From: Lepidodermella squamata
Taxonomy: Eukaryota > Animalia > Gastrotricha
Assembly (NCBI GenBank): GCA_047495785.1
Contig: JBLDXI010000002.1
Span: 372,001-436,000, forward strand
DNA length: 64,000 bases
Direction: 5' to 3'
The notes beneath the pieces are model-generated. The model worked only from the letters and a program-made list of their open reading frames with translations, did not search any database and was not told the origin of the DNA. The position numbers were made by a program, and so were the translations under genes. Below are positions 1,947 to 26,200 of the stretch, one piece after another (within the stretch, counting starts at the first letter, position 1; every line of letters starts with the position of its first letter).

Positions 1947-4900
1947 TCAACGTCGACCGGGTATAGGCAATCGGGGAGCTGCGAGCGGCGCCATGGTGCC
2001 CTTGTCCCGGGCAGCTTGGCGCAGATTTTTGCCCGCCTTCCAGTTTCTGTACGCTCTTTGCAGCGTTTTCGCCGCAACGTCCTGCTTTTTCCGCAGCTTT
2101 GTCGTGCAAACCTTTTGAACTTGAACTCGGTTGGGGAATGTGTTTTTGAACATAGCTTCTAGATTGTCCTTTATCTGCGTGAAATCCTCGCCGTCGTCGA
2201 TTGAACCGAGTGCTTTTCGGACAAGGCCCATGAGAACGTCGAGGCAGTGAACGATTTCCTCGCCGGTTTTGTTGTCTTTCAAGATTGGCATGTCCAGTAG
2301 AGTTAGGACGTGCTCGTTTGGTTTAGGGCACTGAAGTGGGCCTTCGAGAGCAGCAACGAAATTCGACAAATCTTGGTACTTTATAAACTGAGTAGCCAAC
2401 GGGTCGTATTGCTCCCAAGTTGAGTAAAATCGCTGGGTAAATATGAAAAGAGAGTTAAATTGGGAAACTAAACTTTTCGAAAAATTTTGAAGATTTTTGA
2501 AAAGCTGGCACAATTACCTCGATATCATCATCAGTAACGCCAATATCCTCTTGCTGCGTGGCTTGTTGGTAATTATCGAGAATGACAGCCGCAAACATGT
2601 TCCTGAGAATTCAAGCCAACGTAAATCAAATTTTGAAACGAAAAAAGAAACATACACAATGATGAAATAGGTGAACAGCAGGTAAGAGATGACGTAAAAT
2701 GAAGCAAGCTAAATAAATGCATCCAGAGTTGAGAATCATGGTCGAAATTTAAGCGCGAATTACCGAGTAATTGCCGCAATTTCCGAAACCACCAGTTTCG
2801 AGAACGACATCGCCATTCGGCCGCATCCAGGCCGTTCGGTTGCAGCACGGGTTGTTTTTCGGGTAGTTCGGGTCGGTCATGTCGAGGCCCGGCATACACC
2901 CGGTCTGCGGATCGTCGGTAAAACTCAAGCCCTGATGCACGTTATCCCAACCCGAGATAGTTGTAAGTCGGAACAGAGTTAACAGCGCATTTGGGAATGT
3001 GTGAAAATTGACCAGTTCATCGAGATTCCCGCCATAATGGCCAACATGTCCGAATAAGTTCATGCCAATAATTGCATAGATGAAAATGACGAGAAACAGC
3101 AAAGATCCAATGTTCAGTAGAGCTGGCAATGACATTATTAAAGAGTGCATCAATTTCCTAATGCCTTTCGATGTTCGAATGAGTCGTAGTATACGAACGA
3201 CTCGTAAAACTCGAAGGGATCGGAAAATGGACGGCGAAATGACCAAAGAATCGAGCATTTCCTGTAGCATGATGCTCATAATTGAGAGAAGAACAATGGC
3301 GAAATCGAAGATATTCCAGGGTGATTCAAAGTAATGCCCTCGGAGGCCGAGAATTTTCAAAATCGCTTCGAGTGCGAAAATTGACGTGAATACGAAATTG
3401 CAGATTTCTTGAGAAACCCTGAAATCATGGAATTGAAATAGAGGAATTTAGTAAAAAAAGTTTGTAAATTACGAAAACACGATGTCTTGATTGTAATGCT
3501 CCGTGCACATTGCGCCAACATTCCCAAGAATCGCGAAGGCAATGGCAAACTCGAATCGTTGGCTGCTCGCGATTTCAAACATAAAGAGGCCGAAGGAATT
3601 CTATAATGAAGTAGGAAAAATGAAGGAGAGTTCTAATCAGCTTTCAGCATTCAGCGCCTCCGTGCAAATGAGCGTTTCAATGTTGTAATAAGGTTGGAAC
3701 ATACCGTTGGTTTGACGATAGTCTTCCGCGGCTTTTTCGTACCCAGCTTGCTGATAGTTTGGTAGTACTTTTGCTGAGATTCTGTCATGAACAACGTCAG
3801 AGCGGTGCCGCCCTCGTATTTCTTCTTCAAAGCATTGAAATCGTCGATGATAACACCGACGAATAGATTGAGAAGGAAGAACGAGCAGAGAACTATGAAA
3901 ACGATGTAGTAGACATAGTAGAGCATATTCAGCTCAGGAGCGGGCTGATCGCCAATGTTGTTCGGCGAATCGACTGAAAGCTGGAAAACAGACGTCCAAC
4001 CCTCGAAGCTAGCAACCTGGAACAACGCCAGATAAGCATTGGCTAAGTGGTCGAAGTTAACGTAGTAGTAAGACCACTGCCAATTTTGCGGTAGAGATTC
4101 GCAAACAGTTCGATTTGGGGTCAGCCTGAGGGCGGTTCGATTCCCTGAGTTGCGATCAATGCACATCCAAAATTTTCCGGCGAAGAATTGAACGCCCATA
4201 ATGGCAAAGATAAGCCAGATGATGAGTAGGACGAGAAGTACATTAGTGATGCCTGGTATGGCGGTGATGAGAGCGTTCACGACAATTTTCATGCCTTGCC
4301 AGCGAGAAATCTGAAAAAAGTTAGAAAATAAGTCACCGCTAAAACTCAGGGTTCAGCAAAACAAGGTTCCCAATAAGGAAGCCTAATGGTATTGGGAAAA
4401 TATGTAGAACTTACTGCTCGAAGCGGTCGAAGAGCACGGAGGGTACGTAAAGCTCGAAGCGCTGATAAATTGACCCCACTGCCAAGTTCACCGATGATGA
4501 CATCAACGAATCCAGTGATTACAATGACAAAATCCAGCAAGGTCCAAAACGACGTGAAATACACCTTGAACCCCTGCGCGAACAGCTTGATCATCAACTC
4601 AACAGTGAAAACGCCCAGGTACATCCAGTCCATGTACTGAAGGCCGATAGCCAGGCTTGATTCATCGTCCAGGTTCGCGTCTTGCAGGCATAGAGTCAGC
4701 GAGCTGATAAAAATGAAAGCTAGTATGAAGTATTCGAAAGCTTTATGCGTGCAAATGTTGTTCGCTAACTGGCGAGCTCGCCAGAATTTCAGGCCCATAG
4801 GCTTGTCCAGGGCGAAAGCGCCGCACCACCAAGGTATTTTCGCCTCGCAGAGGGGTGAACAGCAGTCTTTGATGTGATGGCTGTCCTCGCCCGAGGCAGT

Positions 4901-7900
4901 TGAACGGGCCGATCGAGCGACGGATCGCGCGGTTACGTCGCCTTTATTGAGTGTAGTACCCGTTGTTTTCGATTTGGTTGATTGAATGTCGACATCGTCC
5001 GAATCCTCGGGGGCGTTTATTCGAACAGTTTTTGCTACAGTATTCGTTTCGACGTCTTCTATATTTGTTGAATATAAAAATAGCTAAAGATTGGATGAAG
5101 GATGAAAGCTGAATCTTACCATCGTCAAAGTATTCCTCGTCATCAGCTGGCGCCGCTGTGGTGGTTCCGTCATCCACTCCGGTCTCTGATTGCATAGCAG
5201 GCGCTGTCGCGTTTCTACCCTTCTTCTTTGGTGCGCACTTTTTGAATTGCTCTCGGAACCAGTGTCTGATATTGCGTAAACGCTTTCGCAGCTTCGACTC
5301 TTCTTCGTCCTTTTGCATCTTTTTCAACTCATCGGCGTTGAAAGCGTTGAGTAAAACGGCCAAAAACAGGTTGAGAACAACGTAACTTCCAATAAACAGC
5401 GTTGCCAGGAAGAAAGGGATGCACCTAAGAGAACAAATTAAAAAAATTGATAATAAAATTGAAAATAAGCACAACTTACGAGGCAGCTCCATTAGCTATA
5501 ATGCAGTCGAACATTGGCTGGTAGGTTTCACGGCACAAAATTCGGAAGACCAGCATGAAAGCGTGGAAGAAGTCATCGAAATTGAACTCAGGGACGCCGC
5601 TGAAACCTGGAAACGGGGTGAAGGTTTGCGGCCCTGGGAACCCAGGAAATTTGTCCACTGTGTAGGTACCGCCGAAAACTTGCATTCCAATAACGGCGAA
5701 AACGAACATGACGATGACAAGCTAAGCAAAGGTAATCAATTAATCTAGTCGGAACCGTGAAGGTGTTACGTACCACGACTAAAAGGTTAAGAATAGCGCT
5801 GAAGGTGCCGAAGATAATTTCCAGAAGCTGGCGCATTTGTTTCCAAGATTGCGCGAGCTTGAGGATTCGAAGCAGTCGAAGTAGTCGGATGATCTGAATG
5901 TTGAAGCCCCCGGCGGAAATGTTAACATTGCTCATAGCTATATCGAGCAAGCTGGAAACAAATTGCGGTAAAATTTGAATATTTTTTTACACAATTTGCT
6001 AACCTTCCAATAACGACAACAAGATCGAGCCAGTTCCATCGATTCTCAAAATACTCGCCGCACAACGCCGTCAGCTTCAAAACCGCCTCGGTGATGAAAA
6101 TGTACGTGCAAACGTTGTTGATCATATCCAAGGCGTTGCTGACATCGTCGGGTATCATGTAGTAATTCGCCGCCATGCACAGCGTATTCACCGCGATAGA
6201 AAATGTGATCAGCAGCTCGAAGAATGGATCAGTCACTATGACGTATAGGCCGTACTGAAATTTGAGCCATCCGAAGAAGCCGAGGCAACATTTGAAGCAA
6301 CACATCGGATTCCGGTCCCAGTAACCGATTTTCGGTAAATCTTCCTGGTCGACAGCACTGGGCGGCCGGGAGGCGGTTCGGTATAGAATGGAATTCTCCG
6401 CACCTGGCCATTTTGTGACATTCTCTTGGTCTAGGTACTCGGCATCAGATTCAACTCGAGACACGGAATGATGGCGGCTTGATGGGTTGTTATGGTGGTG
6501 GGTGTGTAGAACTTGCGGTTTTACGACCGCAACTGGTTTCCCGTTATTTTGAAGGTCCCCATCTGCCAACTCAATCGTGACGGCCGGGGTCACGGCGTTG
6601 ATCCCGCGTAACGCGGCTAATTTCCTCTCGGTTACATTTTTCACGGACATCAAACTTCGAGTGATAGGATTCGGGCCGACTAAGACCAATCGGAGTCGGG
6701 TTGGGTCGAAAACGAATCTGCGACTAGTCGCGTTTTTTCGTGCTTGTTGAATCACCTCAGGTGCGTCCTCGTCGTCGTCATCTTCGTCGACCTGGTATGA
6801 CAGGGCGACTACGGCCTGGACCAAGTTGGCTAAGTAGAAGTTGAGGAACATGATGCCGATGACGAAGAATAGAAAAGCGGCTGGTCCGTTCGCTGCGATT
6901 ACGGCATGGTATAAGAAGTCCCAGTAATCGGTGTTGAACAGCTGGATTGCGACCATGAAGGACGTGTAGAAATTGTCGAATTTCGTGAAGTCATTGTTAG
7001 GGTTCGGGGTACCATCTAACGATAGACAGGTGTAATTTTTGGGACAGTGTCTGAAATAAGGTAAGATTTCAGTCTGGTTTCGTCATTAGAAGACCTAAAA
7101 AGCTTACTGAGCCATCGACATGTTGCCGCAGACCATGAACTCCCATTGATCGTCCTGCATGAACCAGTTACTTTGGTTATAGACCCAATTCGCCCATGTG
7201 ACCTCATTCGGCGCTGTCGCATTCATGGTATCGTTAATCAACATAAAACCACCGATATCCGCATCTCGAACGCACTTGGTCTGCAGGGTACCCTGAAATA
7301 TCTGCGTACCAAATAGCGCAAATACCGTGAAGAACAACATTGTCCTGTAAATCTTAGTTTTACAGCTTAAAGATGAAATGATATAAACTCACATTATCAA
7401 AACGTCGCCGAGCATTCGCAAAGCCCGAAGTAAGGCTTCGATGATAGTTTTTAAGCCGGGTATAAGAGCCACAGTTTTAAGCACTCGGAACACTCGCAAA
7501 GCTTTCAAGGCTTTGAGAGACGCTCGAACACTTTGAGAATTTGCGGCGAATTGCGCTATAATCGTTGAATACGCGCTAAGCAGTACTATAAAATCTAGCC
7601 AGTTCCAAGGATCGCGCAGATACGTGTATTTCGACATGATGACGCCGCGTGACACAGCCTTGACGAGACCTTCGATGGTGTAAATCGCTAAAAATGTGTA
7701 CTCTGGAGTCGCTTCATCGACATTCATTGCCATGTAGAGCTAAAACATTTCAAAAAAATTTAAATTTTGAGAATTTCAAACATGAATTTCAAAGTTCAAT
7801 TTTTCAGAGTTAATCATTCAGAAACTTACACTGTTCGCTAGAATAGTAAAAATGACGACGATATCGAATAAGGGATGGGTGTAAAGGTAAATGGCGAGTT

Positions 7901-10279
7901 TTCTAAGCGGCATCCAAGGTTTGAAAATTCCGAAAGAAGGAGACGCCGAAAACCGGAAAATGTAGCCTGGCTTATCAAGCCGCTTGCTAACCACCATAAA
8001 TGTCTAAAAATCCGAATGTTAATTCCATGAAAAATAGTCGAATTTGTTACCTCTTCGTATTCGCGATTTTTCGGGTCAATATCTTCGATAGGAAGGCCGA
8101 GCATGTATTTAGGGAAATTCATGGCCACAGCTTTCGGTAGGGTTTTACCCTCAGCCAGCTTCGGATCTTCCTCTGGCAGCTCTTCATCGTCATCCGCCAG
8201 ATTGACCAAGTTACCGTCGACAAGTTTCGCCTCTTCTAAAGCTCGTTGCTGGACTTTTTCACGATCCTTCCGAGCTCGTTCGTTCAATCGAGCTCTCAAC
8301 CGCTTATCAGCCTTTTCATCGTACAATTTAAACTTGGAAAGCATGGCTGCGGCAGCTGGTTGCAAAATAATCTGAAGCGAAAAATCAGTTTTTGAATTAT
8401 CCAAATTTTAATAAAGAAAATCGAGAGGTACCTGTTGCGCATTAGGGTCAGCTTGTTGGTTCAAAAACGGGTCGACAAACTCGAAATGCGACCCAGATGC
8501 ATTCGATGAGGGCGACATGGGTGTCACAACACCAACAGACCGCTCGCTACTTGCAAGGCGCCGCCTCATAGCATCCCCAGAGGGCGACCCCTCACGCGAT
8601 TGCGCCCTGGGCGACCCAGCCGGTTGCACTGGGGTCGGCATTAACAGTGCTGAGGAGGCGGTTTTGGATGGCTCCGAAATGGAACCAACGCCAGGTTTTC
8701 TAACGGCTGATGCTTCCTGCTTATCTGTCGCCGATTTCTGCTGTTTTGTCGCGGCATCGTCTGCTGCTAGGTCAGCGTGCAAATTAGAAGCGACCTTGGA
8801 TGACTCAGAAACGGAACCAAGTGGCCCTGGTTTCCTTGCGGTCGCCCCCTGCTTATCTGTCGCTTGTTTCTGCTGTTTTGACGCGTCAGCCTCTGATTGT
8901 TCGTTACGCGCGTTGGAAGCGCCTTTCGATGCGTCCGAAACGGAACCAAGCGCGCCAGGTTTCCTACTGGCTGACGCTGCTTCTTGCTTATCTGCCGCCG
9001 ATTTCTGCTGCTTTGTCGCCTCTGACTGGTCGGCACGTGTGGAAGAAGTGTTCTTGGACGATTCAGAAACGGAACCAAGCCCACCTGATTTTCCTGTAGC
9101 CGGGGTCGCCTCCTGCTTGTCTGTCGCCTGCTTCTGCTGCTTTGTCGCAGCATCACCTTCTGATTTGTCGGCAGGCATGCTTGAGGTGGCCTTTGATGAT
9201 TCCGAAACGGACCCAAGCGTGCCAGCTTTTCTAATCGCTGACGTTGCATCCTGCTTATCTGTCACCTGCTTCTGCTGTTTTGTCGCAGCATCGCCTGCTG
9301 ATTGGTCAGCAGGCATGCTTGAGGTGACCTTAGATGATTCCGAAGCGGACCCTAGCGTGCCAGCTTTCCTTGCATCCTGCTTATCTGTCGCTGGTTTCTG
9401 CTGTTTTGTCGCGGCATCACCGGCAGATTGATCGGCATACATATTAGAAGTGGCCTTTGATGACTCCGAAATAGAACCAAGTGGCCCTGATTTTCTCGTA
9501 GCCGAGGTCACATCCTGCTTATCTGTCGTTTCTCGCTGCTGTTTTGACGCGGCATCAGCCTCTGATTGGTCGCCACGCGTTGTCGAGGTATCCTTGGATG
9601 ACTCAGAAATAGAGCCTGATGGTCCTGATTTTTGCGTAGCCGAAATCGCTTCCTGCTTTTCTGTCGTTTCTCGCTGCTGTTTTGTCGCAGCACCGCCTGC
9701 TGATTGGTCAACATGCAAATCAGAAGTCACCTTGGATGAATCTGTAACGGAACCAAGTGCACCTGATTTTCTTGCTTCTTGATGATCTGTCGTTTGTTTC
9801 TGCTGTTTTGTCGCGGCATCACCTGCTGAATAGTCGGCACCTGTGTTTGAGGTGTCCTTGGATGACTCCGAAATGGAACCAAGTGGCCCTGATTTTCTAC
9901 TCCCTGGGGTCACCTCCTGCTTATCTGTCGTTTGTTTGTGCTGTTTTGTCGCCGCCTCAGCCTCTGCTTGTTCGGCAGCACGCATGGCCGATGCCCCGGG
10001 CGACGACTCGCTTGGCTGAACCGGAGTGGGAGTAAGCATATCCGAGGGCGCTAGGGACAGGGTGACCCTGGTCGGTTCCGAACTGGTACCAGGTGCCAGT
10101 GATTTCCTTGACCCCGACGCCGCTTCCTGCCTTTCTGCCGGCTGTCTTTGCTGTTTTGCCGTGACCACAGCCTCAGACTGGCTGAGCCGCATGGTGGGCG
10201 GACGTTGGTTCCACGGCTGGTCCTTCGCATTCCGGTCCCTGGGCGAGATTTTATCAAAAGTTATCGACATTCTCCGCAT
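1947..10279 (-). CDS. Voltage-gated Nav2-family four-domain cation channel, paralog A (16 exons, about 2451 aa)
   Basis: Exons spliced by eye: 10279-8432, 8371-8051, 8003-7830, 7739-7393, 7344-7108, 7050-6004, 5951-5774, 5721-5480, 5424-5120, 5058-4415, 4310-3705, 3600-3473, 3418-2764, 2708-2656, 2602-2518, 2432-1947. They total 7356 nt, are in frame and are all GT-AG. Motifs: four S4 helices (e.g. LRALRTLRALRPLRAISRWQGMK), YLRDPWNWLDF, P-loops TDYW/RETY/FEGW/ISGW, III-IV linker KKKYEGG..LFMTESQQKYY, EF-hand-like C-terminus and IQ-like AAKTLQRAYR. Confidence 0.93.
8660..10165 (-). repeat. Coding tandem repeat, about 11 units of 42-46 aa (consensus ATKQQKQ.TDKQEA.SA.RKSG.LGS.SESSK.TS...ADQS.GDA) in the paralog A N-terminus
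   Basis: Visible in ORF 8408-10279; A[TS]KQ[QH] recurs at about 126-138 nt spacing. Confidence 0.92.
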
Positions 10280-11405: not shown

Positions 11406-14400
11406 TCATATTTCGGTTTGATTTTGCTGACTAGTCGAAGCTCCCTGAATTTGTTGCATATAGGCCATGCTATTAGCCGCCCGACTATAGGCCGCTTCCT
11501 TGTACTGCTTAGCCGCAAGGTGTTTGCGCCAGTTTCGTTGAATCGTCTTAGCCGCGACTTCTTCCTTTTTCCGCTGCTTGGTCGACGAAACTTTTTGAAC
11601 TTGTTTCCGGTTAGGAAATGTCTTTTTGAACACGTTTTCCAGGTTTTCTTTCACCTGTAGGAAATCTTCGGTTTCTTCCATGAAGCCCAGAGCCTTTCGA
11701 ACTACGCCCATTAGGATGTCTAAACAATGGACGATTTCTTCGCCGTTATGCCGGTCTTTCATTATTGGAATGTCGAGTAATGTCAGCGCATGATCGTTGG
11801 GCTAGAAAAATACAGACGAAATGAAATGAAAATTGAAAAAATCAATTTAAATTCAAATTTTGAAATTTTGAAATATTTTTTGAAATTTGAAAAATTGTTT
11901 ACGAAATTAAAAGAAAATATTATATTTATTATTTATTATAGTATTTTATTACCTTTGAAAGAGCTAGTGGAGGGTCGAGGGCTGAGACGAAGTTTGAGAG
12001 GTCAGCCAGCGGGATGAACTGGGTCGCAGCCGGGTCATATTGCTCCCAAACAACGTAGAATTTCTCGATATCATCATCAGTCACGCCCGTATCTTCTTGC
12101 TGGGTCGCTTGCTGGTAATTATCCAAAATTACAGCAGCAAACATATTCCTGGAAAAAGGTAAGTTCAGAATTTACATAATTAATTTCCGTATTTTAATAA
12201 TTTCCAATTTAATTTCGGAATTTTTGAAATTTTCGGAAAAATCAGCAATCATCTATGGATCGTATCTTTTCGAATTTCCCCAACTAAATTTCAATTTAAG
12301 AACTTACACTATGATGAAATAGCTCAGCAGAAGGTACGAGATGATGTAGACTGTTGCGACATGAAAATTGCCGCAATTTCCCCAACCACCGGAACCTTTT
12401 TCTGGAACCATCTCTCCATTCGGCCTGGTCCAATAGGTCCGATTGCAGCATGGATTACAAGTTGGCCTTCAAAGGAAATTATTATTGCAGTTTTTTAGAT
12501 TTTTAAGTAAAATTACAGGCTGCAATTAGGATTGCACCCGCTTGCCGGGTCGTCCGTAAAACTTAATCCCTGATGAATGTTATCCCAGCCGGAAATTGTC
12601 GTCAATCGGAACAAGGTCAACAGGGCAAATGGGAATGTTTGAAAATTGACGAGCGCGTCCATATTCCCAGCGAAATAGCCGACATGCCCGAATAGGTTCA
12701 TGCCAATGATGGAGTAGATGAAGATGACCAAGAACAGCAGGCAGCAGATGTTGAATAGCGCTGGTACGGACATGATGAAGGAGAACAGGAGTTTGCGGAC
12801 ACCCTTCGAGGCGCGAAATAGCCGCACGACGCGACCGACACGCAAAACTCGTAAAATTCGCAAAATTGACGGCGAGACATTGTAAGATATCAGCAAATCC
12901 TGAATAGCCATTCCTAATATTTGAATAAAAGTTAATTTAATTTTTGAAAATTCAAAAATTTCGAAATTTTAATCGACCATTTGAAAAAACAAATTTTAAA
13001 TCATTAAAAAAAATTTAATTTAAATTTGGGGAAAGCTCTTTGAAGAATCAATTTTAAATTTTTGAATTTTTATAAAATTTCACAATTTTTTACCGATAAT
13101 TGAAGATATGACGACGAAGAAATCGAAGACATTCCACGGTATGCGAAAGTAGTGCTGTCGATAGCCGCCAATTTTCAATACAGCCTCCATAGCGAATATT
13201 GTCGTGAACATCAAATTTAGCAAATCTTGAGCCATTCTGAATAAAAAAATAGGAAAAATTTAAATTAAATGAACCGCTCTATTTCTGATTGAAATCAATG
13301 TTTTCCTTTGAAAAGTTGGAAAATGGAAAAAAAATCAGTTAATTTTCTGATTCTAGGTCTCACTCAAAAAACGAATACTAGAATGGGCCGGCATAGCTAG
13401 GAAAAATTGAAACATTTCCGAATTTCAGCCAAAGTTTGAATGAATTAGGAATTAAGAACCAAGTATGAACGGGAAATTACAAAAAAAGAAAAAATACCAG
13501 AGAAATTAGGTCCAACAGGCAAAAATACCAAAAATTACCGAACCTGTTACTATCGGGTTTTTTCGGGTTTTCTCAGGTAAATTTTAATTTTGCAGGTAAA
13601 CCGCGATTTGAGAACGGCAATTATCAATCTTGAGAAATTCGGTGAATTTTTTGCTCAAACTTGAAAAATTCGGAAAATTCGGAGTTGCGCAACATGGGAC
13701 CCGTTGTATCTAGGTCATAACCTGGAGAACCCGATTAAATATTTTCAATAACAAAAATTTTCAAAAAATATGTTGCGATTGATATCATAAGCTTACGCAG
13801 GTTAATCCATAAAAAATCGAAAAAATCAGCGAAATATATTACGTGAAAGCAGGCGGCTGATCAAAGTGTTCCGTAGCCATAACGATGACATTGGCCATAA
13901 TAACAACCGCAATGGCATACTCAAAGCGTTGGCTGCTCGCTATGTTGAACAAAAACAGCGAAAACGCATTCGCCGGCTTGACAATAGCCTTGCGCGGCTT
14001 CTTCGAACCCAACTGTTTTATCGTTGTGTAGTACTTTTTCTGCGAATCGGTCATGAACAACAGCATCGCCGTGCCGCCCTCGTACTTCTTCTTCAACGCG
14101 TTGAAATCATCGATGATAACACCGACGAAGAGGTTGAGAAGGAAAAACGAGCAGATGACGATGAAAACAACGTAGAATACGTAGTAGTTGATGTTAAGCT
14201 CAGGCGCCGGCTGATCGCCGATGTTGTCCGGCGAGTCGACCGAGTACTGATAGATGGACGTCCATCCCTCGAAGCTGCCCATTTGAAACAGGGCGAGATA
14301 CGCCGTGAATACGTTGTCGTAGTTGACGTAGTAGTACGCCCATTGCCACGTGCCGGTGTTGTTGAGGCAAGCGGCTTGGTTTGGGGCCAGCGAGCGGGGC

Positions 14401-17400
14401 ACTCGGTTGCCGGTTGCGACTTCGACGCACATCCAGAACTTGCCGGCGAAGAATTGCACGCCCATGATGGCGAATATGAGCCAGATTATCATGACGACGA
14501 GCAGGACGTTGACGATGCCTGGGATTGCGGTGATTAGGGCGTTGACGACAATTTTCATGCCTTGCCAGCGAGAAATCTGTGAAATTAAAAAATAATTAAA
14601 AAAAATATCAAAATTCTCAAAAAATATCCAAAATATCCAAAGAAACAGAATTGGTTTCATGCTCTAAGTTTAGAACTCATAAAATTAAAAAAAAATCAGA
14701 ATTTCATTTATTTTCAATTACCTACCGCAATATTTTCATTTCCATTCAGATTTTTTTTTAATTTAATTAAAAAAAATCAAATTAATTTGGGACACTAAAT
14801 TTCAGTGCGATTTTCGTTTCCTGGACAGCTAAAATCGGAAAAAATCACTGATGTGTAAAATCGATACTTGAAATCGATAACTTAAATAGATATACAGCGT
14901 GTCCCAGAAAGTGACTGTTTTTTACTTAGGCAGTTTTTTATTTACCGCGATTTTACCGAAGAAATAGAAAAATTACCGGAGAAAACCCGGAAAAACCCGA
15001 TGGTAATTGGATCGGTAATTTTCGGTATTCAACCCAATTTCTCCAAAATTTTAGAGTTTCTGAACCCTTTCCTGAGCACTTTCTTTGCTTGCGTTGCTTA
15101 TAGGACACGCTGAATAGGAAACTTTTCCTAACAAATAATTTCAATGGCTAATTTCGATAATGTGTTGTTCAGTTAGAGGAAGAGCGTGCTTACCGCTCGA
15201 AGTGGTCGCAGGGCTCGAAGGGTTCGTAAAGCTCGCAAAGAAGACAGGTTGACCCCAGTTGCGGCTGAATCGAGAGCAACATCGACAAATCCGGTCTGCA
15301 ATTAAAAAATTAAAAATATATTGAAAAATTTCTCAATTCGAATTTCACTTTAAAATTTAAAAAAATAGAAATTCAGGTCGAAAATTGAGAATTTTTAATT
15401 TTTATTAACTTGAAATTCATCTTGAAAAGTTCAAAAATTTCAATTTCAAATTTTAAAATTTCACTTTTGAAAAATTTCAAATTTTTTAAATGTGATCCCC
15501 TTGCATAATTAATGACTTAATTAAAAACTTGAACTAACCACGACAATGACGAAATCGAGGAGTGTCCAAAACGAGGTGAAATAAGCCCGCACACCAATCG
15601 CAAACAATTTGATCAGCAGTTCAATCGTGAAAACGCCCAGGTACACGTAGTCAAAATAGCCCAGCACAACGTCCATCGTCGAGCCCTCCTCAAGCGTCGC
15701 ATCTTGCAGGCAAAGCGTTATCGAACTCGCGAAGATGAACGCGAGAATCGACCATTCAAACACCTTGGAATTGCATATTTTAAATGCGAAATTACGAGCG
15801 GCCCACAGTTTAGCGCCCAGGGGTGCGTCCTGGTGGAAGGGTGCCATACATTTCGCCAGCCGGGTGTCCCAACACGGCCAGCAGCAGTCGATCATTCGAG
15901 CGTTTTCGCGCGATGTCGTCGACCGGCCTGTTGTAGTTTTAGCTGTTGTTGTAGCAGAGGTTGTTGTTGAAACTGCGTCCGTGTAAGTATCGGTATGACT
16001 TTGGCGATTGCCTGATGTCTCTTCGTCATCAGCTATCGTTTCTTCAGCTGCTTCGACTCGTATTCGAACGCGGCGGTTGTGATCACCCTCAGTTGTTACT
16101 TCTGCCCCATCGACTGCAAGAAAAATTCCCATAATAAATTAAAATTTCAAGTAAACCACAATTTTGAAAAAATCAATTAAAATTTAATTATAGCGTGTCC
16201 CATAAGTAAAAAATACTCGGAAAATCCAGAGAAATGTGGTCCAACCGGGTAAAATGCCAGAAATGACCGAACCAGTTATCATCGGGGTTTTCCGGGTTTT
16301 TCCGGTAAATTTTTTATTTCTTCAATTAAATCGCAGATCAAAGAAAAAAAGTAATTTGAGGGCTAAATTTGAGACTCTAGCACTAGATTTCCCTAAAATA
16401 TGCTTTTTTCAAGTTCGAAGTTTCATCCGGAATCTCAATTTTCGTGTTGTCTTGCCTAGCCAATAAATCTTCAAAAAAATTCCTTCGAAAATTCCTTTTT
16501 ATTATTGAGACGTCCCATTCGTTGAATGGATGGGCCGAAGCCATGGGTCCCGAATGAGCGCTCTTAGTGTCGCTTGTTGGGGTCTCTTGAGGACAGCTCG
16601 GTAGCGATTAGTGCAGTCTCGCTGACACTCCTAATCTACCACTTTTCACTTTTGTAGCACGATGGAGTGGTCGGCCACCGTCGGGGTAGAGCGTCATTGA
16701 TAAACCACGGTCGACCCGGGTGGGGATCGAACTCGTGCCCATCGATCTTGACGCTCAATACACAGCAGACAGCTATCCACTGAGCTACTGTGTGCCCCCT
16801 TCAAGTTACGCGTATTTTGCGCTAAGAAAGTCAATTCATGAGTTTTATTTCAGCCTGTAGTACCGATATCGATTCCAAGTATCGATTTTACAAATCAGCG
16901 ATTTTTCCGATATCAACCGTCGTTGAATCCGACATCACTAATATTCCTACGTAGCTTGGGGCTCCAGGTAGCTAAAATTAAAAAATCCTACTTCTGGGAA
17001 ACTCTGTAGAAAATTCAACTCCAATTAAATTAATTTGCTTAATCATGGCGAAAAAAATGTAAACATTTTGGAATAAAAAAATTCCACCTTAAAATTCTCA
17101 TTTTTAATAGTTTTCTCAGGTGTTTGTATGAATAAGCGCCAAAACTTGACCTTGTCGTGCGCGTTTTATTCGTCTTATTCTATTATTCATTTGAGGCCCA
17201 AATATACTTGCGTGAGGAAAGAATCGATTGCACTACTAATGATGCACCTATTAAAGTCAATATTATCGCAAAATATCGAGGTTAATATTTGCGCATTTAA
17301 GTAGGACGCCACATGAAAGTGATCGATGATCGGCAATAAAAAAAAGAAAATTCCTTCAAAAAAGCTAGAAATACTATAAAATTTAAATTTTAAATTGAAA

Positions 17401-20400
17401 CTTGAGGGTAAATTTGAATATTCAAGAAAAATTAAAATATTCTAATTTAATTATTAGAAAATTGCATCAAAATCATAAAGAGCCATGTGATCGAAGTAAA
17501 TGTTTTTATAAAAAGCTGAAATTAAATAAATTTTGTCGTTTTGAGCTAAAAAATATTTAAATTTTACCGTTTTTCGGTAAATTTTTATTTAATATTTAAG
17601 ATTCGATAATTTTGGAGCCAGATCGGCGTCAAATTTATCAAAATGTATTTAAATTTCCTGTTTGACCTCATTTATGACAATTTATTGTCAAATTTTAATA
17701 AAATTTGGCTGAAAACGACAAAATCTGGCAAAAATCAAATAAAATCTATGTCCTGCTCGGGGCAGGACATAGATTTTATTTTATTTTTGGCGAAATTCCT
17801 TAAAATTAATATATTTTTGCCCAAAATCGATTACGCAACAGGGCTACAAACATCGCCAATTCCTGTCCAGACACTTTCTCCTTCGAACCGCGCTAAGTTT
17901 GAGCAGGCACTTGTGATGTTCGTCTTCATATCAAGTTTATTGAAGTCGAGCTTGATTTTTATCAATTTCGTCAAAATTTCATCGAAAATTTCGACTAGTT
18001 GACCCCGACGAGCAAAGCCTACTGCACTACCCTTAAGCGCTAGATAAGTGGGAAAAACTATGTGCGCCTTCTTTCTCTTGCGGTAGCCAGTTTTCATCAA
18101 CACGCTCGTTTCGCGATGTTGCAATATTATGAAGCACGCAACGGGCACACAGAATACATGTGTAGCGGAGTGTAGCGAAATTTCAATTTGTTATCATCGC
18201 GAATGACTCTGAAGCAACCTTTGAGTATACCAAAAAGGCATTCGATGACAATTCGAACGCGGCCTGGGATCGACGCTGAACTTCGCTCAAAGGATCACTC
18301 AGATGCGTTATGAGGGACACCAAACATGGATACCCAGAGTCGCCGATGAGGTTCACCAGGATATCGAATTTCAGTTTTAATTTCTTGTGTAATTCTTGCC
18401 CCTTTCTTTCTTGCCCTTCTTCTCGTCATCATCATCTTGTTTCCCATCGCCAACCGATCAACGCGAAGCGAAAATTGCGACTACGATTATACTAGTTTCA
18501 AGTTCTAGAACACGAAATAAGGCTATAACTTGGGGAACCTTGAAATTAGAATTTTTTGAAATGTTGAATAAGAAAAGACTGAAAAATTCAAGTTTCTTCG
18601 AGGAACTGAAAGTCTCGCCTTCACTTTTCAACACTGAAAATGAAATCGGAATTGACCCCAATTTTCTATTTGTATAGTTGCTACAATCTGTGTTTCGCAA
18701 TATTTTCTCTTGTTACGAAACAGCAATAATTTTCAGGTTTTCTGAAAATCAGATAAATTTAATAAAAATTAGGGCAAATTTTCTTTCGATCACACCCGGA
18801 AAAATATTAATTTAATAAATTTACTGGGAATATAGTTTCATAAAAACATTCTTTTCGATCACATGGCTCAAAAATAATCAAAATTTATTAAATCATTGAA
18901 TTTTGAAAAAATAATAAAAATAAATAAACGAACCATCCTCTTCCGTGTTGCTAGCCCCATTCTCCTGAACTTGACTACTGCCATCACCCTCGCAGTCACC
19001 CTCGAAATCAGCAATGGTCGACCTTCGCCTCGCTGTTCGACTCACCGGCTCAACAGCGCCACTCGACTTCGGGCAGCATTTATCAATGGCATTCTTAAAA
19101 AAAGCCTTCAGCCACCGCTTCATGAGCCTAATCCTCTTCCGCAGCCGGTGCTCCTCCGCGTCCTTTGTCCGCTTTTTCAGGTCATCGGCGTTGAACGCGT
19201 TAAGGAGGACGGCGAGGAAAAGGTTCAGGACAACATAACTGCCGATAATTAGCGTGCAAATGTAGAATGGCACGCAAATGGCGGCGCTGTTCGCCGAAAT
19301 GCAGTCCCACATAGGCTGGTACGTCTCGCGGCACAGCACGCGGAATACCATCATGAAGGCGTGGAAGAAGTCGTCCCAGTTCCACTCGGGTATGCCGGTG
19401 AAGCCGGGGAATGGCGTGAAGGTGGGGCGTTTACGGAAAACGGCGTCTGTGTAGGTTCCGCCAAATAGCTGCATTCCGATGACGGCGAAGATGAAAATCA
19501 CGATTAATAGGACAAGCATCAGGTTTCCGATCGCGCCAACAGTTCCAAGAATAATTTCCAATAACTAAATTAAGAAAATATGTTGAATATTCTTTTGAAA
19601 AAATTGAAAAATTACCGTTCGCATAGTTTTCCAAGATTGAGCTAATTTTAAGATCCGGAGCTGGGTAAAATAAATCATTAATTATAATGTTGATGATTTT
19701 GAGGTTTTTATACCAGTCGAAGGAGTCGAATGACGCTGGTGTTGAAGTTGGAAGAAATGTTGACGTTGCTAATCACGATGTCGAGGATGCTGCCGATCAC
19801 AACTAAAAATCGAATTTATTACAATGAGCCATAAAAAAGAGCGGAAATTGCAAAGAGAGGAATTGAGGGAATTTTGGACAGTCATTCGAAATTTTAACAA
19901 ATTATAAAATTCTGAATTTTTTTTTTTGAATTTTGATTGATTAATTTATTTAAAAGATAGGTAGATTCATCAATTTTGCATCCTCCTTGATTTATTGGCC
20001 CTGCAGTTAATTTTTTCAAAATTTCCTAATCTTCCTAATGCTACCTATAGTGTCCCATTCATATATTGATAAAAATCTAGAGTAAATTCTTAAGGAAAAA
20101 TCAAGAACCGGGTAAAATACCGATTATTACCGAGCCAGTTACCATCGGGTTTTAACGGGTTTTCGCCGGTAATTTCAGAATTTCTCCGATGAACATGCGG
20201 AAATTACATACATAGGAAATTTCCCCAAGTCGGTTTGATTTTCAAAATAAAAGAAATTTCAAACACCCTCAAAGTAAGCTTGAGCAATATTTGAGACACT
20301 CTGTACCCCGGACAATTTTTTATTGAAAAATGAAATGAAGGAAATTCCAAATTTTATTCGGAATATTTCGGATTTTCCTTCATTTCATGTTGTTTTTGAA

Positions 20401-23400
20401 CAGCCATAGGCCATAGTTTGCCATAGGAAAAATTATCTTAAAAGACATTTTCAAAATTGTTTTAAAGAAATTGAACCAATTTTTTGTAATGAAGTCCATA
20501 TGAGTTCCTTTATCCACGATTTTACCGGAGAAAACCCCGGTGGTAACTGCTTCGGTAATTTTCGGTTTTTACCTGGTTCACTCAAACTCCCTCGGATTTT
20601 AGCATCCTATTCAAAATAGACATACTTAATTACTTGTCTTACGGGATTTTAGATTTTTCTAAGATTTTTCTGGCCATAAGATATGACTTCCCCTCTCATT
20701 TTAGGTTTTAGGGTTTCTGATCCATTTTCCGTGAATTTACCAATAAAATCCAGCCAGTTCCACCTGTTGACGAAATATTCGCGGCACATGGCCGATATTT
20801 TCAGCACCGCCTCAATGATGAAAATGTACGTGCAAACGTCGTTAATCGTGCCAAGCCTCGCGTTCCACTCATCCGGAATGCCGTAGTAGTAAGCAGCCAT
20901 CGATATGGTATTAACAACAATTGTCAGCGTGATGAACAACTCGAAAAACGGATCAGTCGCTATTTGAAGCAGAATCCCCTGAAAACGAATCCAGACGAAA
21001 AACACGCGGTGCCAGCAGCACGATATGCAACAAACCGGGTTCCGGTCCCAGAACCCGATTTTATCCACCCGCCGAACTGAAATCACACTCGGCGGCCGCG
21101 AGGCGACGTGATACCTCGAATCAGCATGGCTGTATTGCTTGAATTTATCGATTATATGCCGATTGATAGCCGGGTTAGCCGCCATCACCTCACCCGCGGG
21201 TTGGGTGTTCAAACTGACCGATTTATTGACAACGCCATTAGGGTGACTAGTAATTTTTTCCGATGGCAATTTTTGCGGTTTAACCACAGCAACTGGTTTG
21301 CCTATAGCCGCGGCTATTTCGGGGAGTTCAGTCACAGTCGGCTCCTCAGGGATCGCGCTGGTACTAGGTAGGTCCCCATTAGGGTGACTGGGTTCCTCAT
21401 GGGTGACGCCAAGGTGCCGTTCTGTGACGTCTCGAACTGACATGAGACTTCGAGTCCTGGCATCAGGGCCGTCGTAGATTATTCGTAATTTATTAGGATC
21501 GAAGACAAATCGACGTTTTCGCCGCTTTGTGGTGACAGGTAGGTCGTCGAGGTCGTCCTCGGCCTCTTCCTCCTCGACCTGGTACGACAGCGCGACAACG
21601 GCCTGCACGAGGTTGGCCAGGTAGTAGTTGAGGAAGACGAGCGCGAATAGGAAGAAGAGGAAAGAGGCCGGGCCGTTAGACGCTATCACCGCGTGGTACA
21701 AGAAGTCCCAATAGTCGGTATTGAAAATTTGAACAGCTATCATGAAAGAACTGAAAACAAAAAAATTATTGAAAATTGAAAAATTAAAATTTCAAATTTT
21801 TAAAAAATTTTAAATTTTTTGCAAACCTGTAAAAATTGTCGAAGCTAGTAAAGTCGTTATTTCTGCAAAAAATTTAAAATTACTAAAATTATTAAAATTT
21901 AAAATTTAAATTTAAAATTACGGATTCGGAGATCCTTTGACCAATATGCAAGTGTAATTGTTTGGACAGCTCCTAGTGGGAGAAAATTTCATTATGGGGA
22001 TTCCTGGAAAGGTTCAATCTTACTGAGCTCCGGACATATTGCCGCAGACCATGTACTCCCAGCCGTCATCTTGCATGTACCAATTGCTGGAATTTGATAT
22101 CCACTCGTTGTAGGACGGGGCTGATGGGTCGGCTAAGGATACGTTTGAAAGGTTCAGCCCGACTGAATCAGCATTCAGCACACATTTTGTCAGCAAAGTT
22201 CCTTGGAACAGCTGCAAAAAAAATTTTAAAATTGAAAATTATACAAAATTAAAATTTCAATTTTTCAATTTTTCAAATTTCGAATTTCAAAAATTCTATT
22301 TTTGTATATTAAATTCTATTTTTTTTAAATTTATGAAACCCTTACCTGGACTCCAAAGAGGGCGAACATGGTAAAGAAAAATATAGTCATAATTAGGACG
22401 TCTCCAAGCATGCGAAGCGCCCGCATCAGGGCTTCGATGATAGATTTAAGGCCGGGTATAATTGCTATAGTTTTCAGCACGCGAAAGACTCGAAACGTTC
22501 TCAACGCTTGAATGTTCACCGAAGTACCGGACGACACGGCTTGCGCTATTATTGTTGCATAGGCTGATACGAGCACGATGAAATCTAGCCAATTCCAGCC
22601 TTCTCTAAGGTATGTATGCCGGTTTACTATTAGCCCGCGGGCGATTGCTTTGACAATTGCTTCTAGGGTGTAAATTGCTAGGAAAGTGTACTCGGGTATT
22701 GATTCGGAAATGTTCATGGCCATTGAAAGCTGAAAAAATGGAAAAAATAAAATAAAATCTCTCCAAATTATATTTTTTAATTTTGAAACAAAATTCGTCA
22801 AATAAATACACTAAAAAGTCATTAAAATCGATTTTGCAAATAATATATTCTGTCCCCATGTGACAGCATTTCTAGATAGAGTTGGGCCCTTCAATGAACC
22901 TTTTCTTAGCTAACACCGTTATTGGCAAAATCGCTAAGGCGTGACGGCAGGTTAGGTCACGTGACCAAATTTGTACTGGAATATCTTTGCAACGGTATAA
23001 AATAAAAATATGGAATTTTCATAATTTTAATCCCCGTTTTCCCATTACTTAAAAGGTTCATGGCAGTATGGAAAGAAATTTAATAGTTTTTTCTGGAATT
23101 TTTTCAAATTTCAAATTTCAAAATCTAAAATTCTAGATTTTATCCCAGTCGAACGCCGGTTACATCGATACGAACTAACCAACGTGTAACCATTAGGTGA
23201 CGCGGTAGTTGGTAACGTCTTGGTTAGATCGCCATGAAACGCCTTGCTCGCGCATGGCGATTTGAGAGGAAATAGCGCCTTCTAATGGCAATGTAACCAC
23301 CATATAACAGCTGAAATAGGTACATTCAAGGTCTAACCACCGCGTTACGCTGTTATAACTTATGTGCCCACAGTCAGTTATCGAAAATAAAGGCACCGGC

Positions 23401-26200
23401 TCAAGCTCACCGCAATGTAACAAAGTCTTGAATAATATTAAAATTGTGTCAGGCCAGACTTGGACCGATAAATCAAACTGAATATTAACAACTTCAGCAA
23501 TTATCAACTCAATTTTAAATAATGAATAAATAAATAAAATTGGGTTCACTGGTTCCACTGAGGTCGCACATTTCAAGTATTATCAAGTTATAATTTTTTC
23601 GTATCACTCGAATTCAACTAAAGATAAAGCAAAATTCACAATTTGCTTTTGGATTTATGTTTTATCGAAATTCGGCATTATTCTGACCGATAGCATATAA
23701 TGTAGTATATAATGCCTGGCAAAATTCTACTCAGCTGATTTTTCGTCAAGTCTCATTTAATTCAACAGCAAAAGGCGATTTTGTCTCGACGGAATAAAAC
23801 CTCAACGCAACTTGAAAATTCGCAAAAATCTAAAAACATCCAACTTAATTTTTACAATTAGTTCGTGTTTTCTCAAGAAAAAAAATGCTTTTTTTGCTAA
23901 CTGCCAAGACATTCGCAGGCTCACTCTAAAAAACTTAATTTAGTCGCAAATTTAGTTGTCCTACTACCGGCTTTGGCGAGCCTTGCAGTAACTGCCACGC
24001 CGGTTTAGATTTGAAATGTGCCACGGCCTCAACGCATTTTTGGGTCGGCGGTTCGCATTATTAGGGGTAATAATAGCAGGGCACGCGCGCACACTAGCCA
24101 CACTGACAAGCCACGCCGTTCATTATTACTAAATACGGTAGTCGTCGTCATTCGTAATAACGTTTGCTATAACTACAAAAGCAAAAACAACAGAAGTCTT
24201 GAGATTTCAATTATTGTTACATGTCGCCAGCGATTTCAGATTTTTTGATGTTTAGTGGTAAAATGTTCATTTTAATTTCCTGCTATAGATATTAATAGTC
24301 TGTTTTCTGAAGAATGTGCCAGGCTAAAAGCAATAATGGTTTTGAAGGTAATTTTAGCTGTCGCCAAAGCTTATGCAATTATTTCAGTATTTCAGCTAGG
24401 AAATCAGTGAATTTTCAACGGTTTCAAGTTCCGATGGCTCTTTGTCTAGCATGAGATCGACGACGCTCGTCCATGTAAGTGAAAACTCCAAAGTTCATTT
24501 TTGTGTCTCTATTTTTGCCTTAACAGGGTCTATGAAGAAAGTTCGTGAAAGCATTCGGTTTGAGATTCGAATTTTGGGGGCGGATTGTTCGGACCTTTAG
24601 CCCCAGCCCATTGCTTTTATTATCATGGTAAGCATTACGCTTTATCGTGTTATTTTCGTTGACTTGGTTTTTTTACACAGATGCTTCGAATTAAGATAAC
24701 TTTCCGAGCCACCGAGGGCGCGTCGTTTCGGGTTTGTGATGGAAACTACGAGATAGCACTAGTCGCGACAAGTGGAGCAGCCAAGAGCAATCGGGTAACC
24801 CGCTTCTAGATGTGTATCGCGATGGCAAGAATTCAGAGCAACGGCGAGGAAGGTGATCAAAGCAGCACAGGCGAAGGCGACGAAGACGGTGAAGATTTGA
24901 CTAAGATGAATGTTTTTAGTGATATTTCCCTCTATGCATTTCTTTGCTGAAGTAATGCAGTGTGATTTTTATAATGATTTCTCAATACCTACTTACGCCA
25001 TTTTTCGCTCTGACTGATGCGCCTTCTACCATTCATCTATTGCTAATTATGCGCCAACTCTGCATTTTCGCTAACTATTTCTTACTCGCATGTGACTTTG
25101 TTCATTTTTTATGTAATAAATAGTGAAAACTACAAGAAAAGCGTCTCTTATAATGGTTACATCGCCGTCGCATCCCGGTTAGTAGTAAGTGAGTAGTTGG
25201 TGACGTGGTAGTTCGGCCAACGTACGACCTAACGGTGAGCTAACACAGGCCCCGTATTCGTTATTTTGAAAATAGCTTACGATGAGATGACCGGCGTTCG
25301 ACTGGGATGGGCTGAATTAATTTTAATTAAGGATTATATAATCTAATTAATATAATTTTAATTAAGGACGATGACCCATAATTATATATAAAGAATTTAA
25401 TAATAGGATCCTATAATATTAATGAAGTAGGAAATTTTCAAAAAATTGATTGAACTTACACTGTTAGCGAGGATTGTGAAAATGACAATAATATCGAAGA
25501 TAGGATGGGTATAGGCGTAAATAGCCAGCCGCCTAATAGGATTCCACGGCCGAAATAGGAATAACGACGGCGTTGCACTGAACCGAAATATGTACCCAGT
25601 TTTATTAAACCGGCGGCTAATGACTAGAAACGTCTCGTCATACTCGCGATCTCTCGGGTCAATGTCCTCAATCGGCGATCCGAGTAAATATTTCGGGAAA
25701 TGATTAGCAACAGCTCGCGGTAACGCCCGGCCTTCAGCTAATTTCGGGTCATTTAACAAAATTTCCTCCTCCTCCTCTTCGGTGTCGACCACTAGCTGCC
25801 CATCGACCAGCCGCGTTTCTTCCATCTCAGCCCGGCGGCGTCGCTCATCGTCGATTCGCTTGCGTTCATCGATGCGTATCCGCAACGCCTCGTACGATGG
25901 CTTATCGAATGGCTTGAATTTAGCCAGCATAGCAGCAGCACCAGGCGGTAAGGATATAGACGGATTGGCTGGGTCGACCTGGTTAGTGCTAACATTATTA
26001 CTAGGCCGAGGCATGGCTTGGCTTATGTCGTCGAAATGGCTCGATGGCGCGACTACACAGGTCGATTTTTCATTACTCGGACCAGGGCTAATTTGCCGTT
26101 CGGATTTGCTCGATTGATTAGGAATTTCTTGCTCCGCACCACGGCCAGATCTAGGCTTATTCGACATGCTAGTAGAATTGATAAAAGGCAAGGCAAACAT
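11406..26200 (-). CDS. Voltage-gated Nav2-family four-domain cation channel, paralog B (many exons, TE-filled introns)
   Basis: ORF pieces 26200-25460, 22729-22346, 22210-22024, 21750-20740, 19565-18930, 16113-15540, 14577-13843, 12912-12517, 12149-11952 and 11802-11406, plus small exons, assemble into all four domains. P-loops NTDYWD/CRETYQP/SFEGWTS/TISGWDN, LLFMTDSQKKYY linker, IQ motif AAKTIQRNWR. The start could be M at 26200 or at 26167. Confidence 0.9.
14895..15112. mobile_element. Short Tc1/mariner-type MITE (TIR CAGCGTGTCCCA.AAG)
   Basis: TA|CAGCGTGTCCCAGAAAG ... CTTATAGGACACGCTG. The internal CGGGTAAAATACC..AATTACCGAACCAGTTAC..TCGGGTTTT motif also occurs at about 13510, 16237, 20108, 20530, 28912 and 55940. 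Confidence 0.6.
16191..17006. mobile_element. Tc1/mariner-type MITE of the same family carrying a nested SINE
   Basis: TA|TAGCGTGTCCCATAAGTA ... TACTTCTGGGAAACTCTG|TA (degenerate TIRs, TA TSD). Internal segments recur inverted at about 34690-34900. Confidence 0.6.
16497..16799 (-). mobile_element. tRNA-derived SINE (about 300 bp)
   Basis: The minus strand starts GGGGCACACAGTAGCTCAGTGG (A box), has GAGTTCGATCCC (B box) and an unrelated body, and ends in an AATAATAAAA tail. Confidence 0.75.
17480..18869 (-). mobile_element. Decayed PIF/Harbinger DNA transposon with transposase pseudogene fragment
   Basis: 29-bp imperfect TIRs GAGCCATGTGATCGAA(GTA/AAG)AATGTTTTTA. Minus strand 18350-18120 gives frameshifted LIGDSGYPCL...RVRIVIECLFGILKGCFR...ILCARCVLHNIA, matching the HARBI1/DDE_Tnp_4 C-terminal motifs. 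Confidence 0.8.
23144..25306. mobile_element. Non-autonomous CCCAG-ended DNA transposon (EnSpm/CMC-like), about 2.16 kb
   Basis: Perfect TIR CCCAGTCGAACGCCGGT / ACCGGCGTTCGACTGGG, flanked by AT on both sides (possible 2-bp TSD). No intact transposase was seen. Confidence 0.65.

Follow-up and report, generated by a model that had tools for sequence, protein, structure and literature searches.

The window analysed here, a 64,000-nucleotide stretch of contig JBLDXI010000002.1 of the gastrotrich Lepidodermella squamata, carries three genes for four-domain channels related to Nav, the voltage-gated sodium channels. Two of these paralogs, A and B, lie on the minus strand and the third, C, on the plus strand, and in all three the selectivity-filter loop of domain II reads L-C-R-E-T-Y-Q-P-M. 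The genes were modelled by chaining colinearly the blastp matches of segments of open reading frames (ORFs) and by picking GT-AG junctions against a Nav2 reference; five relatives described below were modelled in the same way, and the paralogs were delimited by tblastn of the exons of A against the window. All the models have open frames without stop codons, of about 1370-1930 codons. Introns are small, of about 50-60 nt, with the acceptors TTTCAG or TTTTAG. The models of A, B and C, of about 1700 amino acids (aa), have four six-transmembrane domains, four pore loops, and an S4 segment with Arg or Lys at every third position in each of the four domains; the three proteins are 59-65% identical to one another. 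The model of A is imprecise at its N terminus and in the DIV-S6 exons near 2600-2830. When the window was searched with tblastn at low stringency, no alternative exon of canonical type for the domain II pore turned up.

A preliminary description of this DNA had reported CRETYQP in the three paralogs, and both pattern matches and translations bear this out, with coordinates accurate to within one codon. A degenerate DNA pattern for C-R-E-T-Y-Q-P has exactly three matches in the window, at 5516-5535 and 19314-19333 on the minus strand and at 40674-40693 on the plus strand. By chance one expects 0.01 matches, and three were found in 0/100 shuffles. The translation of 5477-5721 (minus strand) in A contains ...FFHAFMLVFRILCRETYQPMFDC..., and its 81-residue exon terminates in ...FFHAFMLVFRILCRETYQPMFDCIIANGAAS; the translations of B and C contain ...VFRVLCRETYQPMWDC.... 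Different synonymous codons encode the Cys, Arg, Glu, Thr, Gln and Pro of the copies; those of the Arg are CGT, CGC and CGT and those of the Thr ACC, ACG and ACT in A, B and C, respectively.

To which residues of known channels does this loop correspond? A phmmer search with the domain II pore exon of B against all PDB chains placed human Nav1.x at the top (E about 1e-48), followed by cockroach NavPaS and then by the calcium channels Cav3, Cav1 and Cav2. The stretch "...vfrvlcretyqpmwdc..." matches "...vfrvlcgewietmwdc..." of domain II of human Nav1.4/1.5/1.7 without gaps, which fixes the residue correspondences at the filter: Arg stands for Gly at -1, Glu for the filter Glu (position 0), Thr for Trp at +1, Tyr for Ile at +2, and Gln for the outer-ring Glu at +3. 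These are the changes that had been claimed from the sequence (G to R, loss of the Trp, an aromatic at +2, E to Q in the outer ring), and every one of them holds.

Gene A appears to be transcribed and spliced: contigs of a public run from 2015 (X1) reproduce four of its GT-AG junctions. They skip the segments 3418-3472, 3601-3704, 5059-5119 and 5425-5479, which have GT..AG ends on the minus strand and coincide exactly with junctions of the model; the last of them adjoins the CRETYQP exon on its downstream side. X1 consists of assembled contigs, and that it is RNA was a guess, one that the spliced joints support.

Table 1. Positions in the window of the three channel genes and of their filter loops and other pore features
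Feature	Position	Strand	Description
Paralog A	2016..8176	-	four-domain Nav2-like gene of about 14 exons; about 1710 aa in the part with homology
A, domain II pore exon	5480..5721	-	S5, L5 turret, P1 helix and filter loop; 81 aa, from translation
A, domain II turret insert	5590..5622	-	F-T-P-F-P-G-F-S-G-V-P
A, domain II filter loop	5512..5538	-	L-C-R-E-T-Y-Q-P-M; Arg CGT 5530-5532, filter Glu 5527-5529
A, domain I filter loop	6915..6938	-	F-N-T-D-Y-W-D-F; Asp in the filter and also in place of the outer Glu
A, domain III filter loop	3990..4010	-	S-F-E-G-W-T-S; Glu in the filter and no Lys; Ser in place of the outer acidic residue
A, domain IV filter loop	2941..2961	-	T-I-S-G-W-D-N; filter Ser
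A, III-IV linker inactivation motif	3774..3797	-	T-L-F-M-T-E-S-Q; LFM replaces IFM/MFM
Paralog B	11496..25735	-	architecture as in A, introns longer
B, domain II pore module	19046-19564	-	one exon
B, domain II turret insert	19388-19420	-	
B, domain II filter loop	19310..19336	-	L-C-R-E-T-Y-Q-P-M; Arg CGC 19328-19330
B, domain I filter loop	21702..21725	-	F-N-T-D-Y-W-D-F
B, domain III filter loop	14256..14276	-	S-F-E-G-W-T-S
B, domain IV filter loop	12579..12599	-	T-I-S-G-W-D-N
Paralog C	36335..45765	+	architecture as in A and B, opposite strand; earliest-branching of the three
C, domain II turret insert	40531-40563	+	
C, domain II filter loop	40671..40697	+	L-C-R-E-T-Y-Q-P-M; Arg CGT 40677-40679
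C, domain I filter loop	38487..38510	+	F-N-T-D-Y-W-D-Y
C, domain III filter loop	42688..42708	+	T-F-E-G-W-T-T
C, domain IV filter loop	44392..44412	+	T-V-S-G-W-D-N

Relatives, descent and family features

The domain II loop of sodium channels is highly conserved, and searches for relatives turned up very few that share its form in A, B and C. The domain II module of B was compared with HMMER to 1.84 billion cluster representatives, giving 2878 matches, and the loops were read in the best 150. About 107 of these are Nav-type loops; the residue at -1 is Gly in 97 of them, Ala in 7 and Ser in 1, Trp occupies +1 in 104, and Glu occupies +3 in 95. The earlier statement that G-E-W-I-E is nearly invariant is thus sound. 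Arg at -1 was found only in P0001, a 159-residue fragment with CRETYQP, and in P0067, which reads C-R-D-S-V-D-P. Both come from metagenome contigs in ENA, where a prokaryotic gene caller had cut a eukaryotic gene into exons. A length-filtered word-index search with the domain II exon returned P0001 as the sole close relative, and in public protein collections the CRETYQP loop is present only as unnamed metagenome fragments. Scanning the JGI metagenomes for L-C-R-[ED]-[TS]-[YV]-[QD]-P-M returned no relative, its six matches being due to chance, and our literature searches, which included work on Nav2 of nematodes, rotifers and tardigrades, found no published description of the loop. Among other loops that were read, the outer-ring Glu of domain II is a Gln in a few otherwise canonical ones of the form C-G-E-W-I/V-Q-P/S (P0024 of Pomacea, P0036, P0046 and P0112), and a para-like, Nav1-type protein of the damselfly Ischnura elegans (P0128) has an Arg at -1 in domain I (T-R-D-Y-W-E).

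The ENA metagenome contigs yielded three more CRETYQP genes beyond the window: one single full gene (L001/L002) and two tandem genes on another contig (L005g1 and L005g2). A further gene, L003/L004, is intron-poor and made of three long ORFs; it has the filter ring D-D-E-A and the loop C-R-D-S-V-D-P, with Arg at -1 and the outer Asp retained. L006 is a canonical Nav2 with C-G-E-W-A-E-P that groups with arthropods. The contigs of L003/L004, L001 and L005 stem from the same sampling projects, and L003 also holds a gene for eIF2-alpha. Ion_trans matches were recorded on the ORFs of the relatives.

In both the IQ-TREE and the FastTree tree, a single, fully supported clade unites the seven genes that bear the Arg. 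The trees were computed from a MAFFT FFT-NS-2 alignment with Cav channels as outgroup (IQ-TREE: LG+G4, 1077 columns); the Cav sequences fall as outgroup in both. Within the clade A pairs with L005g2 (79% identity) and B with L005g1 (78-79%), so the triplication is older than the split between the organisms. L001 joins the pair of A, and C branches first. In the IQ-TREE tree the clade lies inside protostome Nav2, with a value of 98 in the Shimodaira-Hasegawa-like approximate likelihood ratio test (SH-aLRT), and its neighbours are arthropods and spiralians (Macrostomum, Tubulanus, Intoshia, Pomacea, Batillaria).

The six CRETYQP reading frames are intact over about 1700 codons. Synonymous sites are saturated, with synonymous divergence (dS) above 2 or undefined, and nonsynonymous divergence (dN) is 0.20-0.36; dN/dS is about 0.07-0.13 where it can be computed. 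Because dS is saturated, dN/dS is about 0.1 and the codons of the motif vary, the motif is old and under purifying selection. The preliminary description, from the three paralogs, had called the change fixed and probably selected, and its presence in six genes of at least three genomes, at such divergence, substantiates that judgement.

Which family do these channels belong to? A, B, C and L005g2 have the filter ring D-E-E-S, L001 and L005g1 have D-E-E-A, and neither form contains a Lys. The ring of Nav2 is D-E-E-A, with S, G or T as variants of the A, and DEES has been listed as a Nav2 variant (PMC6259924). In the window copies the loops read F-N-T-D-Y-W-D in domain I, F-E-G-W-T-S/T in domain III and T-I/V-S-G-W-D-N in domain IV, in addition to C-R-E-T-Y-Q-P in domain II. 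The III-IV linker of all CRETYQP genes contains L-F-M-T-E/D-S-Q, with a hydrophobic triplet of the Nav2 type. As for the C-terminal IQ region of Nav2, an IQ_SCN5A_C match was recorded for the L005 product and a faint one for the L004 product; A has a candidate IQ-like stretch, read from its sequence. The closest named proteins are annotated as "sodium channel protein 60E", a Nav2, from a crab, an amphipod, a wasp, a sea spider and a horseshoe crab, together with a clam protein, and they are 47-51% identical over domains III-IV. Two hallmarks of Nav2 are replaced: the domain II loop C-G-E-W-I/V-E-P by C-R-E-T-Y-Q-P, and the acidic outer locus (DCS), DEED or NEED, by F-Q-S/T-N at the position two residues after the ring Trp. 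The published rules for domain II are broken as well, since its Glu "Na beacon" is said to be always present in Nav1 and Nav2 (PMC6259924) and the two families are said always to lack a residue at the "beacon" position, with the Trp following immediately on the filter Glu (PMC10120453). Nav1 is not a better fit, as both domain II and domain III have Glu where DEKA or DKEA would have a Lys in the ring. The same holds for Cav1, Cav2 and Cav3, which have EEEE or EEDD and the "beacon" Asp at +1 of domain II: here domain I has an Asp, domain IV a Ser or Ala, and the +1 residue of domain II is Thr.

The arginine is one among many changes of the clade. We compared the six CRETYQP genes with 44 other Nav1 and Nav2 sequences, searching for positions that are invariant in the clade and occupied by another residue conserved in more than 85% of the others. 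In the loops, these are G to R and W to T in domain II and the outer-ring E to D in domain I. The S6 segments changed in all four domains (G to L and L to Q in DI-S6, N to S and L to V in DII-S6, the invariant G to C in DIII-S6, Y to F in DIV-S6), and DIII-S5 has F to I. No new acidic residue that could be a partner of the Arg appears among the clade-invariant changes in this comparison. In the alignment of the pore loops, acidic residues above the filter were lost in domains I, II and III, and a single one is left in each of domains I and IV. The DCS locus of Bertaud et al., DEED in CaV4 and NEED in DSC1 and BSC1 (PMC10983803), thus reads F-Q-S/T-N in the clade. Finally, all the CRETYQP genes, including L001 and L005, have an insert in the L5 turret of domain II, F-T-P-F-P-G-F-x-G-x-P-E-W-N-W, which is present neither in canonical Nav2 nor in L004.

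Possible consequences of the remodelled pore

On balance, we lean towards regarding A, B and C as ancient tandem paralogs from a divergent Nav2 subfamily (DSC1/BSC1/"CaV4"/60E) that is specific to its lineage, with a remodelled outer pore and a reduced preference for Ca2+. How would such a pore work? The filter of these channels combines a ring of side chains (position 0) with two rings of backbone carbonyls contributed by the residues at -1 and -2 (PMC10120453). The Arg at -1 would line the pore with its backbone carbonyl. By analogy with the Lys of domain III of Cav3, its side chain is probably placed next to the carboxylate ring or underneath it, and not within it as the Lys of DEKA or DKEA is. 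An Arg is not tolerated in the canonical loop, since G950R in SCN1A causes Dravet syndrome (PMC5445024). The changes of W to T or S and of I to Y probably make room for a bulky residue at a site that otherwise needs glycine, and the Arg would require the accompanying replacement of the Trp. The C-R-D-S-V-D-P loop of L004 suggests the order of events: G to R and the loss of the Trp came first, and Tyr and Gln later.

Outer acidic residues attract cations and bind guanidinium toxins (PMC10120453). Together, the Arg and the neutralised vestibule would lower the negative field of the filter, and because of this lower field Ca2+ would be bound and selected more weakly. Compared with canonical DEEA channels, which are Ca2+-selective or non-selective (PMC10983803, PMC3809514), we would expect weaker binding of and block by Ca2+, lower Ca2+ selectivity and a relatively higher permeability to monovalent cations. 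The conductance would perhaps be below that of DSC1 and CaV4, and the site for guanidinium toxins would be lost. A lower affinity and selectivity for calcium is, judging from the sequences, the most likely effect of the remodelled pore.

Several points weigh against this reading. FastTree sets the clade just outside bilaterian Nav1 and Nav2; the branch is long and an approximately unbiased (AU) test leaves the outside placement unrejected (p = 0.25). Expression evidence concerns A only, it comes from the assembled contigs of a run guessed to be RNA, and the coverage by X1 was established at the introns of A and not confirmed at the codons of the motif themselves. We infer from sequence both the position of the Arg side chain and everything said above on selectivity. 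The D, E and E carboxylates retained in the filter can by themselves support Ca2+ permeation, and the side chain of an Arg is long and could reach the filter ring.

This last possibility leads to a different explanation, in which the Arg side chain enters the filter beside the domain II Glu, in the manner of the Lys of DEKA or DKEA, and confers Na+ selectivity by a third, independent route. The preliminary description had proposed it, and part of that proposal stands: a basic residue is placed directly beside the filter Glu in seven genes, and Nav1 channels owe their Na+ selectivity to a Lys in domain II or III (PMC6259924, PMC3809514). Taking the Tyr as the ring Trp also puts a small neutral Thr at the +1 "beacon" position, comparable to the Ser of T-L-E-S-W in NavAb, and the beacon model ties a small neutral residue there to Na+ permeability (PMC10120453). 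The idea of a third independent way is nevertheless weakened on several counts. In solved channels the residues at -1 and -2 offer their carbonyls to the filter and not their side chains (PMC10120453), a basic residue at -1 is already native to domain III of Cav3 and to domain II of euglenozoan channels, and Cav3 with its Lys at -1 is still a Ca2+ channel (PMC11143251). Moreover, the Arg predates CRETYQP, as it co-occurs in L004 with an acidic D...D loop whose outer acidic residue is retained, and in the clade it is only one of many changes that jointly strip the outer vestibule of acidic residues. We thus find a side chain within the filter rather improbable.

There is also a purely structural alternative, which we consider unlikely: the domain II loop would have returned to a generic x-E-x-aromatic register, shared by the other domains and by Cav and BacNav channels, with no change of selectivity, the Arg would pack or form a salt bridge behind the filter, and the other substitutions would be compensatory. 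C-R-E-T-Y corresponds position by position to T-L-E-S-W-type loops (NavAb TLESWS is quoted in PMC5445024), co-substitution seems needed since a lone G to R is pathogenic in SCN1A (PMC5445024), and the change of several S6 invariants in the clade suggests a general repacking of the pore. However, L004 has a Val in place of the aromatic at +2, the comparison with 44 sequences gave no new acidic partner for the Arg, and the coordinated loss of vestibule acids over three domains looks functional, not compensatory. A more radical version of the functional view, in which the R(-1)/T(+1)/Y(+2) loop and the neutral vestibule make a new selectivity class, a Nav2 derivative preferring Na+ or monovalent cations that arose once more independently and with no lysine in the ring, also seems to us unlikely.

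Two further explanations have less to recommend them. The neutral ring and the guanidinium group of the Arg might be an adaptation that removes the site for guanidinium toxins, such as saxitoxin (STX) and tetrodotoxin (TTX), or for cationic blockers. Indeed, the outer carboxylates of domains II and III, tied to TTX and STX affinity and to toxin-driven substitutions, are here Q and S/T (PMC10120453; PMC6259924, legend of Figure 4). There would be little to gain, though, since the canonical Nav2 of the honeybee, CaV4, is already TTX-insensitive (PMC10983803), and W to T and G to R would remain unexplained, which makes this very improbable. Close to refuted is the idea that these copies are decaying or conduct no current and that the motif is functionless. 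It could account for changes at residues invariant in other Nav, such as Gly to Cys in DIII-S6 and Gly to Leu in DI-S6, but not for six intact frames of about 1700 codons, for a dN/dS of about 0.1 with saturated dS, for pairs of orthologues across species, or for the splicing of A.

Other features of the window

Directly upstream of A, and on the same strand, lies a stop-free frame of 640 codons (8411-10330, minus) with repeats of roughly 35 residues in which Ser, Thr, Lys and Gln abound (…ATKQQKQxTDKQEA…SGPLGSISESSK…). It could be a separate gene or an N-terminal extension, and it has no Pfam match. A perfect minisatellite of 15 nt at 755-1090 can be read as (FPFLS)n, or as (KERKG)n on the opposite strand. 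Two identical ORFs of 101 residues, with a weak PAN-domain match, lie about 4.4 kb apart on the minus strand (46410-46712 and 50818-51120), in what looks like a recent local duplication. Also on the minus strand are a gene resembling Cys-loop receptors, with a weak match to the ligand-binding domain (48208-49848), and a putative receptor-type guanylyl cyclase (about 52000-58200), recognised by eye from its catalytic-domain exon at 52002-52520. A single-exon GDSL esterase similar to IAH1 lies on the plus strand (29605-30327); its matches, at 34-44% identity, are scattered over eukaryotes, and the best of them (44% identical) is a metagenome protein, so that the esterase carries no taxonomic signal. 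Pfam matches of neighbouring ORFs likewise included no family specific to a lineage.

Comparison with known channels

Reviews of four-domain channels treat G-E-W-I-E, with its Trp after the filter Glu and its "Na beacon" Glu, as a constant of Nav1 and Nav2, and CRETYQP breaks all of these at once. This matters because models of Na+/Ca2+ discrimination rest on a constant domain II loop. Here is a natural and conserved subfamily that tolerates a change, G to R, which alone causes Dravet syndrome in SCN1A. It offers a natural experiment on what selectivity, conductance and toxin binding owe to the residue at -1, to the Trp of domain II and to the outer ring of acidic residues, on which co-substitutions render an Arg at -1 viable, and on how excitability is organised in this lineage.

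The closest known systems are the Nav2 channels (Drosophila DSC1/NaCP60E, cockroach BSC1, honeybee CaV4, Nematostella NvNav2.1), which share with A, B and C the four-domain architecture, a D-E-E-A/S ring without Lys and the hydrophobic triplet of the III-IV linker. In both, the domain II loop is followed by a Pro (…EP in Nav2, …QP here). The Nav2 channels differ in having G-E-W-I/V-E where the clade has R-E-T-Y-Q and DEED or NEED where it has F-Q-S/T-N. The turret insert, the changed S6 invariants and the long branch also set the CRETYQP clade apart. CaV4, for its part, is Ca2+-selective and TTX-insensitive (PMC10983803).

The remodelled turret recalls another channel. In Cav3, the L5 turret of domain II switches the preference between Na+ and Ca2+. 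The turret lysine of exon 12a of Lymnaea LCav3 is likewise a positive charge in domain II outside the canonical ring, and it shifts the Ca2+/Na+ preference; the domain II turret is remodelled in the CRETYQP clade too. The LCav3 lysine differs in lying in the extracellular L5 turret and in being alternatively spliced, whereas the window has no alternative domain II exon.

For the location of the side chain, the best structural precedent is the Lys of Cav3 domain III, a conserved basic residue at -1 beside an acidic filter residue. Cav3.2 has the filter E378/E974/D1504/D1808, with K1503 just before D1504 (PMC11143251, PMC10110893); its equivalent in Cav3.1, K1462, forms hydrogen bonds to blockers in the region of the pore occupied by Z944 (PMC11143251, PMC10110893). 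This precedent is in domain III and not II, belongs to another family, has Lys and not Arg, and sits in an otherwise acidic filter (EEDD, with the "beacon" Asp).

The filter residue of domain II is also preceded by an Arg in euglenozoan four-domain channels (diplonemids, a kinetoplastid and metagenomes), where this Arg at -1 is conserved in several species and the loop reads T-R-D-D-W (P0063, P0083, P0091, P0104, P0107, P0114 and P0138) or T-R-D-G-W (P0134). In the tree they belong to an unrelated Cav-like clade; they have Asp at 0 and +1 and keep the Trp. The cnidarian Nav2.5-type channels with D-K-E-A (Hydra and Nematostella; "CGKWIEP" in P0086) also have a basic residue in the domain II loop, but there a Lys replaces the filter Glu in an otherwise canonical loop, whereas CRETYQP keeps the Glu and has its Arg at -1. 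Finally, mutations in the domain II loop of SCN1A (G950R/G950E, W952G and E954K) that cause Dravet syndrome (EIEE6) hit the same positions of C-G-E-W-I-E, and G950R is the very same substitution (PMC5445024). Those are single, disease-causing substitutions in a canonical Nav1, while the changes in CRETYQP are combined, fixed and conserved.

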